A stretch of 64,000 nt of DNA from Epithemia pelagica (lineage: Eukaryota > Protista > Bacillariophyta): assembly GCA_946965045.2 (NCBI GenBank), contig OX337229.1:4464001-4528000 (forward strand), read 5' to 3'. Below the pieces are notes generated by a model. That model had not been told where the DNA came from. It saw nothing but the letters and a program-made list of their open reading frames with translations, and did no database searches. Below, piece by piece: positions 30,769 through 37,696 of this stretch (position 1 is the first letter of the stretch; the number at the start of each line of letters is the position of its first letter). The position numbers and the translations under genes are program-made.

Positions 30769-33700
30769 TTGGAGATCCAGAGAATATCGTCTACTGTGGA
30801 GAACCAACCAACAACAACTACAGATCAGAAATCATCATCATTTGGCGCTGTCCTGTCGCCCATACCACCTCATCGTTCACTCGAATTACTGAAAGGGCCC
30901 AAAGAAAAGCTTAGTCGACTTTCCATTGAAAGAATGCAAGCCGGAAAACCTATTCGTGTTTTGGTGAAGAACAGCTCCGACACAGTGAAGGAAAATGGTG
31001 AAGTGGAAGATGTTGGAGGGAAACCATCCGCCGCATCTTTTCGCAACAACCGAACGAGCAGTTCTTCCATCACCGACCAGCAGCCGTCAGTTGGGAAAAA
31101 TCGGAAACGCGGAAATCGAGGCGAATCTTTGTCAGCCACGGTTGCACAACCAATAACAGGCAGTGGAGAAAAAACAAATCGCAGTGGCAAAGGAAAGCCT
31201 AACTTTTCGAAAAGTCGAAAACCCAAATATGATGTGGTTCATCTCATTGATCTGGCTCCAGAGCTCGGGAACGCTGGTAACAGGAAACAGCGGGATTCAC
31301 AACCGAAAAAAGCGGCAAACAAACAAGAAGTATCAGGGCAGACGAAAAAAGACACAAGAGGGCCTGACCGTTCGTACAATCAACCATCGAATCTAAAGCC
31401 GAGACAGGCGCCTCAGCGTTCTCTGAAGCAAAACCCTGCTGCCAATAAAAAGAGCACATCGGATAATCCTCATCCTGTCCTAAGTATGGATGATTTTCCT
31501 CAGTTACCAGTGAGTGAAAAAAGTGAAGCTCGTCTCAATCCTTTGGCTCGACCATGGACACAACATGGTCACATCCCAGTGCCATCGAATATCGCTGAAA
31601 CGAAAAATTCGATTCTTCCTTCAAAGTCAAACTCAAAAGAAACTCAAAAGAATCGGTCTGGAACAGCAGATTCACGGAGCGGGAAGCTTCAAAATTTGGG
31701 TAACAAGTCTGTAACCAACGAACAGATCAAGAAGAAGGACCACACGGTGAAGACCGAAACGCAGCAGCGGGCTCCTGAGAAACATGCATCATCGGGAAAG
31801 ATGAAGGGGAGCAAAACCACACCATCATCAACTGCGGCGGTTTCGTTATCAGATATGTTTGCGGCCAAGCAAAGAGCGCCTGTTTCAAATGAGGATCATA
31901 CGGGAGGCGATGCATTACAGCTTGTACGATTAATGATGGAAGGGAAGGTTGCAACTTCACATAGGGGCCATGGTCATCGACAACGGATTGGACCGAGGAA
32001 AAAGAAATTCAGTACTCTCAAAAAGCACGTCCTCAAAGAACGTTTGCTAAAGTGGCAGCTTCAGAATGCTTCAAAGGTTCCGGAGAAAACAGCTCAGGTC
32101 CAAGGCGAGGAGAGTGGTGGTGTGGCGCCAACCAAAGAAAATTCGACAGCAACCACCATTTGTATACTGGGATTCGCAGAACCCGATCTGATAGAGGATG
32201 AAGATGAGTATGAAGAACTGGTCAGAAACCTAGAAGACATGGCGAAAGAAATTGGACAATACAGAACAATCTTCATACCTCGGCAAAATCTGCAAATACA
32301 AGTAAGCTCACCGATGGAGTCACCGCAGCATCCTGCCTTTGTTCGCTTTACGGATGTAAGAGAAGCGGAAGCAGCTTTGTCTTGTTGGAATGGTTTAACA
32401 ATGGGTGGTAAGCCTTTGCTCGTGGATCGCGTCACACATATATCTGGTGGAGACGAAGATGCTGGTGCCTCGAGTGAGGACTCATCGAAATGGGAAAAGG
32501 ACTGTGAGGATTGGTATACCCGAGGTTCCCTTCCTCCATTGAAAGAGGAAGCTAGCAGCATAGCACAAGTACTTCTGCAGGATGTCCTGACAGAAGATGA
32601 TTTGGACGACGAAGACTGCCTCGAAGAGAGTTTAGAGGACATTCGCAAGATGGCTGAACAGCACGGTCTGGTCAACGAAATCCGAGCGGACAGAGCGTCT
32701 AAATCAGTTACAATCATCTTTGATCCCTCCGCTTCTGGCGCTGATACGGCAAGGAAAGCAGCGGATAATTTCGGAAAGACCATTCTTGGTGGGTCATCGA
32801 TTATTGCACGGCTCCAACAGCCTAACGAGCGCAGTTCAATTCTGTTGAAGAATGTCTTTTCAGAGGAAGACTTGGATGACGAAGACTGTATGGAAGAAAG
32901 TTTGGCGGATCTGCGTGAGCTGGCAAGCAAATATGGCCATGTTGCGTCGATTGAGCCCGTCGAGAACACTGCGGACGCTATGGTTAATTTCTTGGGTCCA
33001 GAGAAAGTTGCTCAGGCCGCTCGTTCGGGTTTCCAAGGAATGGTTATTGGCGGCGCAGAAGTTGCAGCCGTCGTTCTCGGTGTCAACGAAGGGGGTACTG
33101 ACGTACCAGCAGACAACATGTCTTTATTAGAGTCAGCTGGTACTACAGAGTACAAAGATGAACCATCAAGTGACTCATCACCAACACCGCCATCGCAGCT
33201 GTTTTCTGGGGAGAAACTTATAGGTGAGAGATGGGCCGAATGCAAACGGGCTTCCAAAATTCCAAACGGTAGCAATCCACGGAGATATGCGACGCTTGTT
33301 GACGATGAAACGACGAAGCCTCTTCTCGTTGAACTGTTGAGTGAATTGATGAGACTTCAAAAAAGAGCTGTTGAAGAAGATAAGAACACGAAAGCAAAAA
33401 GACGGTTGGTTCTAGGGCTTCGGGAAGTTGCGCGAGGCATTCGAACCAAGAAAGTAAAAATGGTGGTCATGGCCAACAACTTGGACGAATATGGTGCGAT
33501 TGACGATAAGCTTCAAGAAATTCTGGATCTAGCCTATCACGAATCCATCCCTGTTTTCTTTGAATTCAGTAAGAGGGGGCTTGGAAAAGCTATTGGTAAA
33601 ACAATCAAAATAGCTGTTGTCGGGTAGGTTCCTTGTGCAATTACACCATGTGAACGATGTATTCAATGACATCTCACACCTTTCGTTTGACACTTTCCAG

Positions 33701-33782
33701 TATCCAAAATCCAGAGGGGGCTCACCAAACTTTTAAGAAACTTCTGAGATTGCAGCCCTCTTATGTACCTGCGCATAGTTGA
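30769..33782 (+). CDS. SECISBP2: SECIS-binding protein 2-like (SID motif and L7Ae domain) with three inserted UHM/RRM domains (last intron 33624-33700; 5' end uncertain)
   Basis: SID-like KKKFSTLKKHVLKER. SBP2-type ELLSELMRLQKR...KAKRRLVLGLREV...VVGIQNPEGAHQTFKKL. The ORF starts at TTG and the first ATG is at about 30934. Confidence 0.85.
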
Positions 33783-34296
33783 ATGACGGAAAGCAGGGTA
33801 TCGGGCTCATTCTCGTGCGCCCCATGTTTTCTGGATGTGTTAAAAGTTACGAGGATTGCTCGACCGCGCTGTTTTCCAAAGAGCGTTCCTTTGATGATTC
33901 GTTATCCGGTTAGCATGTGTGGATGCGGCACTTGAAACAAAGATGTTCATAAACACAGATTGTTACCACTATGTTATTTGCTTAATACGTCACTTGACCG
34001 AAAAATGCGGTAACGAAAAGGTTTGGAATATCATCGTCCCCTATATAGAAAATGGACAAACAGCATGACACCACGCGTCCGAAAGAAAGTAGACCAATAA
34101 GCTTTCTCAATCAACAAGGCGAGGTTGGGCTCGGCATCAAGCTTCGTGGCATGACAAGAACGCCCAACTTCGCTTGGCGCCAATTATCAGGGTCCTGATA
34201 GACAACGGCCCTGGGATTGCTTTGTATTAAAAAAAAAGCCTGCTTATTGTTTGTGGTAGTCTGGTGATCGCAAATGTTCTCAAAAGAACGTTGATC

Positions 34297-37200
34297 CTAA
34301 CGTCGTGGGCCGCCACCAAAAGGGTTGGAGAATGAGTTCCCTCCAGTTGCGCCTGACGATGATGAGGGTATTTGGTGCGAAAACTTGCAGTTATTCCCAT
34401 ATCGACACTGACCACGGGCGAAGAATTTACAAGGGGGACGATTGTCCGGAACAGAGGACCCAAATGAGCCACCACCCCCACCAAAGGGAGTCGCCGCTGG
34501 CGGAGGAGAACCGAAGGGAGAAGAATTTGAGGCAGCCGGCGCTCCAAACGGGGAAGGTTGTGACCCAAACGCTTGCTGAGGAGTCTGTGAACCAAATGTA
34601 GAGTTGGTGTTGCTCGGTGGAGCAGCTCCGAATCCTCCACCAAATGGCGAGGGGGATGGGGCTTGGTTACTAACTGTGGCAAAAGGCGACGCCGAAGGGG
34701 GAGGAGCAGAACTGTTGCCAAAAGGTGACGGGTTCGCATTGGGAGCCACTCCAAATGGAGAAGGATTACTAGCTCCTAAAGATGATGCAGGTCCCGCGGT
34801 AGAAGAAAATGGGCTGGGATTCGACGCAGGGACTCCACCTCCAAACGGGGTTGTGGAAGACGGTCCTCCCCCGAATGGTGATGCCCCAGTGGATGGAGTT
34901 GATGCAAAGGGAGTTGCAGAGTTTAGAGGATTTGCAGAGCCAAAAGGAGACGCGATCGGTGCACCAAAAGGTGAAGTCGAGGGAGGCGCTGAACTCCCAC
35001 CGAAAGGGGTAGTTTGGGCCGCCGGTGCACCAAAAGGCGACGCCCCAAACGTACTATTGCCACATACCGGAGCTCCAAAAGACGGCTGTGAAGATGGAAC
35101 ATTCGGAGTGACCGAGGGTGTTGCGGCGCCTAAGCTTCCACCCATGGGAGTTGGAGCAGCGCTACCAAATCCACCTGTGCCTCCTCCAAAGGGAGATGGT
35201 GAGGAGGTAGAGGTATTTTTGTTTGCTGCCGTTGTATTCATTTTGTCGGAAAGCATCGATTCCGACGTTTCAGGCTGATTTGCTAAACCAAATGGAGACG
35301 GATTCGATGAAAACGGCGACGGTTGGCTATTGGTAGTCTGTGCTGGTGGCTGAGCGACACCAAAAGGATTTGCTACGTGAGTTCCGCCACCAAACGGGTT
35401 TGGCGCCTTGGCTGGAGCAGCAGTGTTACTAGTAGCCATGCCAAAGGGAGAAGCAGAAGCACTGGGTGATGCACCAAACGGATTGTTGAGTTGTTGTTGA
35501 GGCATTGCGCCGTTGCCGGGGGGAGGCGCAGCTCCTGGAGCAGAGGAGATCGGCTTCCGTGTGCCTGTGGCACTAGATCCATGGTATAGTTCACCCAGCG
35601 CTCGACTGGGGAGAGTAGTCTTGAATGATTCAAATCCACCATCCAAGGTTTTTCTCAAACGAGTCGCGGAAGGTTTTCCCACTGCTCCTTCATCCAAACG
35701 AGGCAGGCAATTCGTTTGAATTTTTTCAAGACATTTCTTGAATTCATCCGGGAAAGTATTGGCCAACATGTGTCCAGCACCGGTCAAAAAGGCATCCAAA
35801 ACGGGCGCTGTAATCAAGGGCAATGGTGAGACGGGTGGCTCGGGGAGTTCCGACAAGAATCGAGAGAGCCATTTGACTGCTCCCTGGTGTCCACCGAAAA
35901 GGTTATGTTCTGCAGGTTCTGACGACATTATGTTGGCAATGATAGAAACCAGTCCTTCCGTCCGAGCCAAGAATCGTTCAAAGGTTTCGAAGTTGCCGTC
36001 TTTGCCTCTCAGCATGCCCAAAGTTTCCATAACTTCATCCTCAGTAGCATCCTGCGCAATCTTTGGAAGTCTGGGAATGGCGGTAGGACACACTGTATAT
36101 ACATGAGCGGCCAAAACTGGGATAACGTCTTTATGTTCTACCGACACCATGGTCAACATGTGTGCCAGGGGAAATCCATCTCCACGTTGTCCATTGAATC
36201 CTTCCGCTTGGACCCGAACAATCACTTTGCTGCACAGTAAATCTACAAAATATCGTTTCCCCTTGGCCATCTCGGGACTATATTCTCCATTTCCAGCCTT
36301 GATTTGTTCTTGAATTTGTAGATCATCTTCTTTTGCTTTTTTTATTGCTGCTGCCACATCCCCGGCTACGGTCCGAATTTTATCCGCATCTTCGGATAGA
36401 GTATTGACTTTTCCGTTAACAATCTTTTTCATTTCTAATCGCCGCCGTCCCATTGGTTTCGATTTGTTAAAGGGTTCCACTGATTCTTGTAATTGCTTGA
36501 GCTGCGCCACTAACTTTTCGGCTCTTCCAAGATAGTCTCGTGCAGCGGCCCTTTCGGCTTGCTCCTTGGCAGCTTTTTCAGCGGCGCGTTGTTCCTCACG
36601 TAAACGTTGCTGTTGCTGTGCCTTGGCAAGGGCTTCTCCTTCTGCTGCAATCTTTCGCTGTCGTTCCAATTCTTGCAATCGCAGAGTTTCGGCCTTGGCG
36701 GCTTCTTCCTCACGTCTTTGTTGTGCCGCCATCAACTTGGCTTGCTTTTGCTCTGCCTTTTGCAAAAGCGCCTTGATCTCACGACAAGTATCGCTATGTT
36801 GTTTGTCAAATTTTCGCTTTTCTTCCAACATTTCTTGCCGAATCTGTTGTTCCGCGGCGCCGAGCTTAATATAGGCAGAAGGCAATGGAGCTGGTTCCAA
36901 AGAGGGAAGATCACTGTCGTCTTGCCTCGAATCTACTGATCGAACAATGATTGCAAGTGCATCCATGGCATCATTCAGATCCTGAATTGAAGGCTCACCA
37001 TCCCCATTTTCATAATCTCGTTGATTTTGCTTTCGCGAGGCTGAGGAAGCGTCTTGAATAGCATACTTGAGAAGAGTCTTCATAGGAGTAGTATCAGTGT
37101 TAATTCGTGCTGAAAGAAGGGCTTGTTGCGTCGATTGACCAATCGGTGGCTCTTTCCTCCATTTGTTCAGAATAGGACTTCCAGTCCCACGACTGTCATC

Positions 37201-37353
37201 TTCATCATCATCGTCATCCGTCCTGTCTTCATCAAAGAAATACCGAGACTGCCCTATGCCTCCGCACGAATCGAGAGAAAGTTCACCTGACATGGTAGGT
37301 CCCAGTTCCTCCGCATCCTCCTCGTCCTCCTCCAAGAGAGCGAACCGTGGCAT
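34297..37353 (-). CDS. GLE1: mRNA export factor Gle1 with a C-terminal FG-repeat region and CCCH zinc finger
   Basis: A coiled coil is followed by the Gle1 domain (KIVNGKVNTLS, VYTVCPTAIP, FLARTEGLVSIIA, AVKWLSRFL, KPSATRL), about 26 FG dipeptides (mostly SPFG/NPFG), and CKFFARGQCRYGNNCKFSH. Confidence 0.85.
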   Translation of the reverse strand: MPRFALLEEDEEDAEELGPTMSGELSLDSCGGIGQSRYFFDEDRTDDDDDEDDSRGTGSPILNKWRKEPPIGQSTQQALLSARINTDTTPMKTLLKYAIQDASSASRKQNQRDYENGDGEPSIQDLNDAMDALAIIVRSVDSRQDDSDLPSLEPAPLPSAYIKLGAAEQQIRQEMLEEKRKFDKQHSDTCREIKALLQKAEQKQAKLMAAQQRREEEAAKAETLRLQELERQRKIAAEGEALAKAQQQQRLREEQRAAEKAAKEQAERAAARDYLGRAEKLVAQLKQLQESVEPFNKSKPMGRRRLEMKKIVNGKVNTLSEDADKIRTVAGDVAAAIKKAKEDDLQIQEQIKAGNGEYSPEMAKGKRYFVDLLCSKVIVRVQAEGFNGQRGDGFPLAHMLTMVSVEHKDVIPVLAAHVYTVCPTAIPRLPKIAQDATEDEVMETLGMLRGKDGNFETFERFLARTEGLVSIIANIMSSEPAEHNLFGGHQGAVKWLSRFLSELPEPPVSPLPLITAPVLDAFLTGAGHMLANTFPDEFKKCLEKIQTNCLPRLDEGAVGKPSATRLRKTLDGGFESFKTTLPSRALGELYHGSSATGTRKPISSAPGAAPPPGNGAMPQQQLNNPFGASPSASASPFGMATSNTAAPAKAPNPFGGGTHVANPFGVAQPPAQTTNSQPSPFSSNPSPFGLANQPETSESMLSDKMNTTAANKNTSTSSPSPFGGGTGGFGSAAPTPMGGSLGAATPSVTPNVPSSQPSFGAPVCGNSTFGASPFGAPAAQTTPFGGSSAPPSTSPFGAPIASPFGSANPLNSATPFASTPSTGASPFGGGPSSTTPFGGGVPASNPSPFSSTAGPASSLGASNPSPFGVAPNANPSPFGNSSAPPPSASPFATVSNQAPSPSPFGGGFGAAPPSNTNSTFGSQTPQQAFGSQPSPFGAPAASNSSPFGSPPPAATPFGGGGGSFGSSVPDNRPPCKFFARGQCRYGNNCKFSHQIPSSSSGATGGNSFSNPFGGGPRR

Positions 37354-37696
37354 TTTGTAGCTTTCTCTGGATCTCCTGGAAGACTTGCGCAAACGTGGGA
37401 TCGGTCACCACAAACAATGCAAAGAGAAGGAGGAGGAAGAGGAAGATGGCATGGATTGCTGTCTCTGGAAAAATTGAACAGACAGTTGCATGAAACTTCT
37501 TCCACGTTTGTCGATCCAATCCATCGCCAAGGAGCGGGCGCGAGCATGCCTGTGAACTCTAAAACCAAGCGATCACGTATTGAACTTAGCAATTATTTCA
37601 TTCATCTACAAACTCTTCTTTACCGATGGAGAGTTCGGTACATCATATCAAGTGCGACTGCGTCTCCTCTGCGCGCGGCATGCGCAAACTTCTTCC

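Follow-up and report, generated by a model that had tools for sequence, protein, structure and literature searches.

Can Gle1 and its pore partner Nup42 exist as one protein? The question is raised by a gene of the diatom Epithemia pelagica, for which a preliminary description had proposed, at positions 34297-36500 of the window (the whole stretch of 64,000 nucleotides analyzed), an intronless fusion of Gle1 to Nup42-like FG repeats and a CCCH finger. [quoted passage not shown] Lin et al. (2018; PMC5998080) explained its effect by stabilisation of Gle1 together with anchoring of FG repeats near Gle1, while another group reported direct stimulation.

The protein encoded at this locus has five parts, from N- to C-terminus a disordered N-terminus, a long coiled coil, the Gle1 C-terminal domain (CTD), an FG stretch and a CCCH finger with a conserved end. 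Their positions in the window are as follows.

34297..37353, minus strand: complete coding sequence of the Gle1-FG-CCCH protein, 1018 aa, with the stop codon at 34297-34299
37129..37353, minus strand: disordered N-terminal region, aa 1-75, starting with an MPRF(x)L motif (pLDDT <50)
36940..37083, minus strand: two short helices, aa 91-111 and 123-138, predicted with moderate confidence (pLDDT about 55-64)
36541..36855, minus strand: coiled-coil region, aa 167-271, predicted as one long charged helix (AF2, pLDDT 72-88)
35535..36644, minus strand: segment duplicated elsewhere, aa 238-607, covering the end of the coiled coil and the whole CTD (branch points 35534 and 36644 in all four runs)
35584..36537, minus strand: Gle1 CTD, aa 273-590 (Pfam GLE1, profile against PDB, AF2, Foldseek)
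34441..35568, minus strand: intrinsically disordered FG domain, aa 596-971 (25 FG, mostly SPFG, NPFG and TPFG)
34375..34431, minus strand: CCCH zinc finger C-x8-C-x5-C-x3-H, aa 975-993 (zf-CCCH_4, E=4.9e-9)
34300..34374, minus strand: C-terminal tail, aa 994-1018, ending in NPFGGGPRR (family alignment)

In the mechanical list of open reading frames this frame spans 34297..37392 on the minus strand, and its first ATG, at 37353, gives a protein of 1018 aa. A stop codon in the same frame precedes this ATG by 42 nt, the N-terminus of the family (MPRF...) begins exactly at the ATG, and none of the 1018 codons is a stop codon. The interval given in the preliminary description was thus too short; it misses about 285 N-terminal residues, those of the disordered region and the coiled coil, and the gene extends about 850 bp further, to 37353. 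The coding sequence is identical to protein P0001 of ENA assembly ERZ21939226 (contig ctg1267l), and the same sequence was found in four runs. Contigs of run X2 tile positions 33700-37415 with zero joints within the frame. This run is RNA-like, as it lacks coverage at 37416-37599 and is the sole run in which the adjacent gene shows a GT..AG joint; the RNA evidence is contig-level, no run is recorded as RNA, and contigs of this kind cannot prove a single transcript. Expression as a single unspliced gene is the best explanation of these observations. Together with the occurrence of the protein as one frame in more than 130 diatom proteins, the uninterrupted codons and the joint-free RNA-like contigs agree with the intronless frame proposed earlier.

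The identity of the folded domain is clear. Pfam GLE1 (PF07817) matched aa 285-545 at E=2.4e-25 and 89.7 bits, far above its curated cut-off of 24 bits, and covered profile positions 3-249 of 250. Profile searches against PDB returned human Gle1 at 1.3e-20 and yeast Gle1 at 8.9e-6; the alignment to human Gle1 carries the fold to about aa 590 and stops at most 5 residues short of the human C-terminus. The AF2 model of the CTD has a pLDDT of 92.4 and a pTM of 0.90. When it was compared with PDB by Foldseek, the 13 best matches were all Gle1 CTDs (human, S. cerevisiae, D. hansenii and C. thermophilum) at TM 0.63-0.81, followed by a sharp drop. The domain had been read as Gle1 from the sequence alone, and both the profile match and the predicted fold confirm that this diatom protein is orthologous to the mRNA-export factor Gle1.

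One detail of the CTD differs from yeast and human Gle1. Yeast residues K377 and K378 of the motif KKCP, which we take to be ligands of IP6, were reportedly identified as such by Alcazar-Roman in 2010 and Montpetit in 2011. Where yeast and human Gle1 have KKCP, diatoms have YTVCP, in which C and P never vary and Y hardly does. The yeast-type lysine pair, which makes up 2 of about 6 pocket residues and is the part examined here, is therefore missing and aligns with TV. Metazoan Gle1 is IP6-independent as well (PMC5998080), so the missing pair is no argument against membership in the Gle1 family. Given YTVCP, helicase regulation in diatoms may depart from the yeast model.

A second copy of the Gle1 CTD was detected on another contig of the same assembly. 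It comprises 370 codons, in frame and gapless, is 96.8% identical, and is hosted by another ORF with FSFG repeats. The copy lacks the xPFG/CCCH tail, so the statement in the preliminary description that the fusion hard-wires Gle1 to these elements needs a qualifier. The in-frame capture of the CTD by an FSFG-repeat ORF in this species may point to a repeated benefit of tethering Gle1 to FG repeats. The branch at 35534 was also considered as a gene boundary or a chimera and rejected as such; it coincides exactly with the flank of this paralog.

Upstream of the CTD the protein follows the tripartite plan of human Gle1, which consists of an unstructured N-terminus (1-123), a coiled coil (124-355) and a CTD (382-698) (PMC5998080). 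In the AF2 model aa 1-75 are disordered, aa 167-271 form one unbroken helix, and the CTD occupies aa 273-590; the coiled coil sits where that of human Gle1 does (PMC5998080). Among 28 diatom proteins M1 never changes and at least 90% retain R3 and F4, and 25 further representatives start with M.RF. By analogy with the N-terminus of human Gle1, the MPRF(x)L region is a candidate pore-anchoring peptide.

Since the CTD alignment reaches the end of human Gle1, the FG domain begins where canonical Gle1 ends. It starts within about 10 residues of the CTD end in the same frame and is thus covalently linked to it. Of the 27 FG in the whole protein, 25 fall within aa 626-964 (about 35478-34460), including 12 SPFG, 4 NPFG and 3 TPFG; 20,000 shuffles of the segment gave 4.2 +/- 1.8 FG with a maximum of 12. 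This disordered stretch of about 375 aa is rich in S, P, G and A and practically uncharged, with 9 charged residues in 381 aa (aa 590-970). No tandem copies were found at the DNA level among the repeats, which rules out both a recent expansion and an assembly artefact. The finger that follows reads CKFFARGQCRYGNNCKFSH (aa 975-993), and all 28 diatom proteins compared share its C975, C983, C989 and H993. The ...PFGG(G)PRR end is conserved across diatoms, with F1012, G1014, R1017 and R1018 invariant. The coiled coil, FG repeats and CCCH finger of the preliminary description were all recovered, as the helix at aa 167-271, the 25 FG and the zf-CCCH_4 match. In PDB searches the finger proved to be of a generic type, with comparable matches to ZGPAT, ZMAT5, CPSF4 and RBM22.

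Do the repeats and the finger come from Nup42? Among 5.8 billion proteins the FG+CCCH module had one non-diatom match, P0220 (E=5.8e-7). P0220 is a genuine fungal Nup42/Amo1, with a C-terminus that aligns with the crystallised Gle1-binding motif (GBM) of Amo1 (6B4G_B, E=9e-7). The diatom protein and P0220 agree at 38% over 243 aa in their FG regions, a similarity that is partly compositional, and at 44% over 34 aa in their fingers. A comparison of the two fingers by hhalign gave a probability of 97%, the diatom finger being C-terminal, not N-terminal. SPFG is the commonest FG flavour of both proteins, and among Pfam models both fingers match zf-CCCH_4 best. The nearest named Atlas clusters of the tail were all of the Nup42/CG1 type (Amo1_N/NUP42_C), at scores of about 0.8 that serve as a lead only.

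The third element of Nup42, its GBM, was not found in these comparisons. The precomputed Pfam lists gave the Pfam 38 models Amo1_N (PF27634) and NUP42_C (PF27899) for no diatom member, and gave PF27634 for P0220. PDB searches with the tail returned no Nup42/AMO1 chain at E up to 1. The family profile had 76 matches at E up to 10, and the 60 best of them likewise contained no such chain; hhalign of the diatom family against the GBM of P0220 gave a probability of 0.9%. The idea of a GBM concealed at the junction of the CTD with the FG domain was considered and rejected: the CTD alignment covers human Gle1 to its end, and from Y590 to the finger there is no conserved block. These PDB, profile and hhalign comparisons bear out the proposal that Nup42-like elements are present in altered order and with no detectable Gle1-binding motif. 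A simple end-to-end fusion does not explain the module, since the order is Gle1-FG-CCCH here and CCCH-FG-GBM in Nup42. Because the fusion shows no evident substitute for the GBM, a separate protein with a GBM could still exist. No stand-alone diatom CCCH+FG protein was present among the protein matches to the tail. Matches lacking GLE1 were considered as stand-alone diatom Nup42s and rejected; each begins inside the Gle1 CTD and is a fragmentary gene model.

The fusion is widespread in diatoms. Of the 134 family members with at least 150 aa downstream of the CTD, 132 have 10 or more FG together with one or two CCCH fingers, and all full-length diatom copies recovered are one long Gle1-FG-CCCH protein. 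A word-indexed search with the single protein returned 66 homologues from diatoms only, HMMER with the CTD gave 538 matches, the best 150 of which were all diatom-like, and a word-indexed search with a 25-sequence profile returned the same set again, also diatoms only. The fusion occurs in raphid pennates (Epithemia, Amphora, Mayamaea, Fistulifera, Seminavis, Nitzschia, Pseudo-nitzschia and Cylindrotheca), in Thalassiosirales (Thalassiosira, Stephanodiscus and Cyclotella) and in Attheya; Cyclotella/Stephanocyclus is among the ten most divergent fused representatives. Independent diatom sequences with the same continuous architecture number more than 130 and come from genomes, metagenomes and transcriptomes (MMETSP). 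The proposed mapping covers diatoms, and the matches listed included none from other stramenopiles. The fingers number one or two and lie from about 60 to about 450 residues past the CTD, and some metagenomic relatives carry PFS/PFA or Tyr-rich NPY/QPY repeats instead of FG. In the Atlas, the sole GLE1+zf-CCCH cluster among the nearest listed has Bacillariophyta as its commonest phylum, and the fold search returned one GLE1 cluster, from Mucoromycota. We found no paper on a Gle1-FG-CCCH fusion. All its parts are known and databases already label such proteins GLE1-like with a CCCH finger, so this is no new kind of machine.

We lean towards the explanation that the diatom Gle1 orthologue, encoded by a single gene, obtained its FG/CCCH module most probably from a Nup42/CG1-type gene and that the tail acts in a Nup42-like manner at the pore. 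The protein keeps the usual Gle1 plan, with a presumed anchoring N-terminus, a coiled coil and a CTD that presumably activates a DEAD-box helicase. Right after the last CTD helix come the xPFG domain of about 375 residues, the CCCH finger (two in many other diatoms) and the ...PFGGPRR end. The covalent FG repeats probably take over the role that the Nup42 FG repeats have in yeast and humans, the part played by Nup42 being described as "anchoring FG repeats proximal to Gle1 in the NPC" (PMC5998080), and the finger may supply a local RNA or protein contact. A peptide bond would then stand in for the non-covalent interface between the Nup42 GBM and Gle1. The Nup42/CG1-type gene could have been fused and rearranged in a diatom ancestor. 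Of the Nup42 fusion proposed earlier, the resemblance of the module to Nup42 stands through the P0220 match, whereas descent from Nup42, as against convergent gain, is unproven. We infer pore localisation, receptor binding and helicase activation for the diatom protein, as well as loss of a separate Nup42 in diatoms.

Another possibility is convergent accretion, in which diatom Gle1, with no contribution from Nup42, grew a low-complexity xPF(G/S/A) tail and captured an exon of one of the many CCCH genes, while Nup42 was lost independently or persists in divergent form; even then the tail may act in a Nup42-like manner. The permuted order, the missing GBM and the lack of Amo1_N/NUP42_C in the precomputed Pfam lists are consistent with this, as are a finger that matches many unrelated CCCH proteins about equally well and varies in number and position between diatoms, and an evolutionarily plastic tail with PFS/PFA or NPY/QPY in place of FG in some metagenomic relatives. 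However, the sole non-diatom match of the tail is a genuine Nup42 and no other FG nucleoporin or CCCH protein, both modules match P0220 and share its SPFG flavour, the host of the CTD paralog in the same genome uses a different flavour (FSFG), and both sub-modules are attached to the known binding partner of Nup42. We regard convergent accretion as unlikely, though deserving of serious attention.

It is quite improbable, in our opinion, that the tail and finger serve cytoplasmic functions of Gle1 such as translation and stress-granule or RNP-condensate dynamics. CCCH fingers are typical RNA-binding modules, and an uncharged, S/P/G/A-rich, disordered composition like that of the tail is also found in condensate-forming regions. 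Cytoplasmic roles of Gle1 with other DEAD-box proteins are documented (PMC7864074, PMC7851961). Yet regular xPFG spacing with almost no charge is what characterises cohesive nucleoporin FG domains, nucleoporins are the closest relatives of the FG+CCCH module, and the conserved N-terminal peptide and the coiled coil have counterparts in the portions of human Gle1 that target it to the pore (PMC5998080). Read-through of neighbouring Gle1 and FG/CCCH genes or a chimeric contig, suggested by contig-level read evidence and a graph branch at 35534-35563 near the CTD/FG boundary, is close to refuted by 1018 codons without a stop, the same architecture in more than 130 independent diatom sequences, four runs with the same sequence and a branch at 35534 that the paralog's flank explains exactly.

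A whole algal lineage with FG repeats and a Nup42-type finger on Gle1, and with the GBM undetectable, provides classical Rosetta-stone evidence that FG proximity is what was selected. A more far-reaching version, which we put forward tentatively, is that diatoms lack both a stand-alone Nup42 and a GBM-Gle1 interface, that Gle1 itself has become an FG nucleoporin with one or more RNA-contacting CCCH fingers, and that only the placement of FG repeats next to Gle1 was selected. If true, this would be a natural experiment on whether Nup42 tethers, stabilises or directly stimulates. The Nup42 GBM has the further effect of stabilising the Gle1 CTD in fungi and humans (PMC5998080), and the fusion predicts that the diatom CTD is stable without one. 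This prediction is directly testable because diatoms such as Phaeodactylum and Thalassiosira can be manipulated genetically. More generally, opisthokont-based parts lists of the pore can miss components that are present as domains of other proteins.

The combination of an FG domain with a folded pore component in one polypeptide is also found in the Nup98-Nup96/Nup145 precursor and other FG nucleoporins. Proteins of the Nup98-Nup96/Nup145 type are scaffold-anchoring or autoproteolytic nucleoporins, have no CCCH finger and are not helicase activators. In diatoms as in humans, Gle1 is built from an N-terminal region, a coiled coil and the CTD. Canonical Gle1, with its orthologous CTD and shared N-terminal plan, ends at the CTD (698 aa in human, 538 aa in yeast; Atlas GLE1-only clusters, 481-645 aa). 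Nup42, hCG1 (NUPL2), S. pombe Amo1 and plant CG1 likewise have one zf-CCCH_4-type finger and SPFG-rich repeats. Nup42, however, is a separate protein of about 400-600 aa in the order finger-FG-GBM, whereas diatoms have (Gle1)-FG-finger-short tail, in many cases with a second finger, and no detectable GBM. In the Gle1-Nup42 heterodimers of yeast, C. thermophilum and human (6B4E, 6B4F and 6B4G; PMC5998080) the same CTD fold is coupled to an FG domain, through a folded Gle1-binding motif on the hydrophobic CTD surface there and through a peptide bond at the C-terminus of the CTD here.

One long open reading frame on the minus strand (34297..37392 in the six-frame ORF list) encodes the Gle1-FG-CCCH protein in the window. 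Its first ATG lies at 37353, with an in-frame stop upstream, and translation from this ATG gives 1018 residues with zero internal stops, identical to P0001, a prior prediction on ctg1267l of ENA assembly ERZ21939226. The preliminary description ended the gene at 36500, about 850 bp too low, yet all the elements it named, namely a Gle1 domain, FG repeats, a CCCH finger and a coiled coil, are present where it put them. The N-terminal domain is Gle1 by HMM: Pfam GLE1 (PF07817) matches residues 285-545 (E=2.4e-25, 89.7 bits versus a cut-off of 24), and zf-CCCH_4 matches residues 971-993 (E=4.9e-9). Between these two domains, residues 626-964 carry 25 FG dipeptides in which SPFG, NPFG and TPFG predominate; shuffling the same segment yielded 4.2 +/- 1.8 and never more than 12 in 20,000 shuffles. 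Charged residues account for 9 of 381 in the FG-bearing segment, and no DNA-level tandem copies were found among the FG repeats.

Four public runs include the locus, available as contigs only and none registered as RNA. One of them, X2, is transcriptome-like, being the only run with a GT..AG joint, which skips 77 nt in the convergent neighbor gene. Its contigs (longest 19.6 kb) tile 33700-37415, and coverage is absent from 37416-37599, immediately 5' of the ATG. The proposed single intronless ORF is borne out by 1018 codons without a stop, and X2, as contigs only, shows no splice joint inside it. Breaks between X2 contigs correspond to one variant site and to two branches of the graph, one at 35534 and one at 36644. 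These branches were rejected as gene boundaries after they were traced to a paralogous copy of the Gle1 C-terminal domain (CTD), P0003, on a different contig (ctg1302l) of ERZ21939226:

L001:3661-8553, plus strand, P0003 locus on ctg1302l, with a copy of window 35535-36644

The P0003 protein is 95% identical to residues 238-608 of the window protein. At the DNA level the copy is gapless over 1110 bp (370 codons) with 96.8% identity and contains the end of the Gle1 coiled coil and the CTD; the loose ends that all four runs show, the RNA-like X2 among them, are precisely its flanks. It is in frame within a 1631-codon open frame, with about five FSFG-type PGGFSFGSSITSAPTPFTQPLSS repeats upstream and 460 residues downstream that matched no Pfam family. 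Compared with the window gene, dS is 0.069 and dN/dS 0.31. Several strongly conserved positions have derived residues in the copy (P423H, R565S, E438D). The window gene is therefore the conserved Gle1 orthologue, and the copy reflects a recent domain capture that is lineage-specific, with uncertain function; it is notable that this capture again puts a Gle1 CTD beside FG repeats.

X2 contigs cannot prove a single transcript, and the main support for one gene is comparative: the continuous Gle1-FG-CCCH architecture recurs across genome, MMETSP transcriptome and metagenome sequences. Many public gene models of this family (P0139, P0142, P0157, P0159-P0163 and others) end in ...VQAEGFNG or begin with ...IMSSxP, which implies that other diatoms have conserved introns there, at which prokaryote-style gene calls break. 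At both sites the window gene lacks an intron. The convergent neighbor (30769-33627, plus strand) is an ORF of 952 aa with a precomputed match to Ribosomal_L7Ae (SBP2-like); since the 77-nt GT..AG intron in X2 (33623-33699) falls at the end of this mechanical ORF, the true C-terminus of the neighbor lies beyond 33627.

Searching a word index with the full-length protein gave 66 proteins, and the closest named source was Epithemia (57% identity). Further named sources were Amphiprora, Amphora, Mayamaea, Fistulifera, Seminavis, Nitzschia, Pseudo-nitzschia, Cylindrotheca, Thalassiosira, Stephanodiscus and Attheya, to which the most divergent fused representatives added Cyclotella/Stephanocyclus. 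An exhaustive HMMER search with the CTD only (E up to 1e-3) found 538 proteins, and the best 150 of these were all diatom-like, with identity of at least 45%. We fetched 141 members with a recognizable CTD end, of which 134 have at least 150 residues beyond it. Mapped across these 134 diatom members, the fusion proved general, with at least 10 FG in 132 (median 24 FG, median tail 392 aa) and at least one CCCH finger in 132. Exceptions are truncated models or P0108, a member with an FG-poor tail that keeps its finger. Two fingers occur in 57 of the 134 (P0015-P0051 and others) at highly variable spacing: Thalassiosirales have a tandem pair close to the C-terminus, separated by about 45-70 aa, and in some Bacillariaceae the first is about 60 aa past the CTD and the second near the end. 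A single finger is present in the lineage of the window protein, to which Epithemia, Amphora and others belong. Among the nearest clusters listed in the Atlas, the sole GLE1+zf-CCCH cluster has Bacillariophyta as its commonest phylum.

Common to the family are an MPRF(x)L start (aa 1-6 of P0001, window 37336-37353) and a ...(N/S)PFGGPRR end (aa 1010-1018, window 34300-34326; variants end in W or WR), which are candidate docking peptides. The aromatic-repeat tail itself is plastic. P0090 and P0237, on JGI metagenome contigs of about 2.1 kb, have a diatom-like Gle1 CTD (45% identity) followed by Tyr-rich NPY/QPY/QSY repeats in place of xPFG, with no finger in the sequence available, while the tail of member P0086 has mainly NPFS/SPFS.

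When the tail (residues 600-1018) was searched alone, each diatom match proved to be a piece of this fusion; matches lacking a GLE1 label were rejected as stand-alone proteins, as each begins inside the CTD. The sole non-diatom match was a Penicillium protein, P0220 (E=5.8e-7), with Pfam Amo1_N. Its C-terminus aligns with the crystallized Gle1-binding motif (GBM) of C. thermophilum Amo1/Nup42 (6B4G_B, E=9e-7), and P0220 is therefore a genuine Nup42. The FG regions of the window protein and P0220 are 38% identical over 243 residues, with an (N/A)PSPFG flavor in both and SPFG the commonest type in each. Their fingers are 44% identical over 34 residues, including a stretch beyond the finger, and among Pfam models zf-CCCH_4 fits both best, although the finger type common to Nup42 and diatom Gle1 is generic. 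The two alignments are mutually non-collinear, consistent with the changed order of Nup42 elements noted in the preliminary description. Language-model neighbors of the tail were without exception Nup42/CG1-type clusters, of animal, fungal and plant origin, which at scores of about 0.8 we treat as a lead only.

The expected lack of a Gle1-binding domain held in every comparison: no GBM was found in the diatom tail by phmmer or by the family profile against PDB, and hhalign of the family against the P0220 GBM gave a probability of 0.9% (97% for the finger as positive control). Amo1_N (PF27634) and NUP42_C (PF27899) are absent from the precomputed Pfam lists of all diatom members. We conclude that, by the features that define Nup42 as a family, the window protein falls outside it and is, by analogy, a putative covalent Gle1-Nup42 unit in its way of working. 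Of the proposed Gle1-Nup42 fusion, a Gle1 with a Nup42-like FG/CCCH module on one polypeptide stands; descent of this module from Nup42 is plausible and unproven, and we would put it near an even chance. The diatom protein is a lineage-wide, single-polypeptide version of the Gle1-Nup42 module in which the order is permuted and no binding motif was detected.

Gle1 has been recorded in diatoms/heterokonts or reviewed in papers on pore inventory and pore evolution (PMC1257468, PMC2951903, PMC8421043), and a survey of export factors did not recover it outside opisthokonts (PMC3032688). Neither these papers nor full-text literature searches gave a description of an FG/CCCH extension of Gle1 or of a Nup42 fusion. 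Some members carry automatic database labels such as "mRNA export factor GLE1" or "GLE1-like protein/CCCH-type zinc finger".

Lin et al. concluded that the GBM of Nup42 has two effects, stabilizing the CTD of Gle1 and anchoring "FG repeats proximal to Gle1 in the NPC" (PMC5998080). In diatoms, a peptide bond would do this anchoring. The xPFG domain may recruit an FG-binding export receptor with its mRNP beside the CTD, where Dbp5 activation would occur, and the finger could supply an extra RNA or protein contact. With no GBM, the diatom CTD must therefore be stable alone or covered by something else. The "KKCP" motif of yeast and human Gle1 is "YTVCP" in diatoms; its lysine pair in yeast, K377/K378, provides IP6 ligands. 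Judged from sequence, the missing GBM and the "YTVCP" motif suggest a mechanism that differs from the yeast model. Focused follow-up of the Gle1-FG-CCCH fusion, by comparison and by experiment, is worthwhile.

A profile built from 28 diatom CTDs had PDB matches to Gle1 of human (1.3e-20) and of yeast (8.9e-6), and its alignment with human Gle1 ends no more than 5 residues from the human C-terminus. An AlphaFold2 model of residues 268-604 (pLDDT 92.4, pTM 0.90) gave Gle1 CTD structures as all top 13 Foldseek matches in PDB (TM 0.63-0.81), below which scores fall sharply, to MIF4G-like folds. The full-length predicted model gives the following order:

residues 1-75, disordered N-terminus
residues 91-138, two weak helices
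residues 167-271, coiled coil, one long helix
residues 273-590, CTD
residues 596-971, FG domain, unbroken disorder
CCCH finger, small folded unit, pLDDT ~70
C-terminal tail after the finger, disordered

Human Gle1 has a plan of N-terminus, coiled coil and CTD (PMC5998080), which the window protein shares. Canonical Gle1 stops at the CTD, whereas the FG domain and finger of the window protein are added exactly there.
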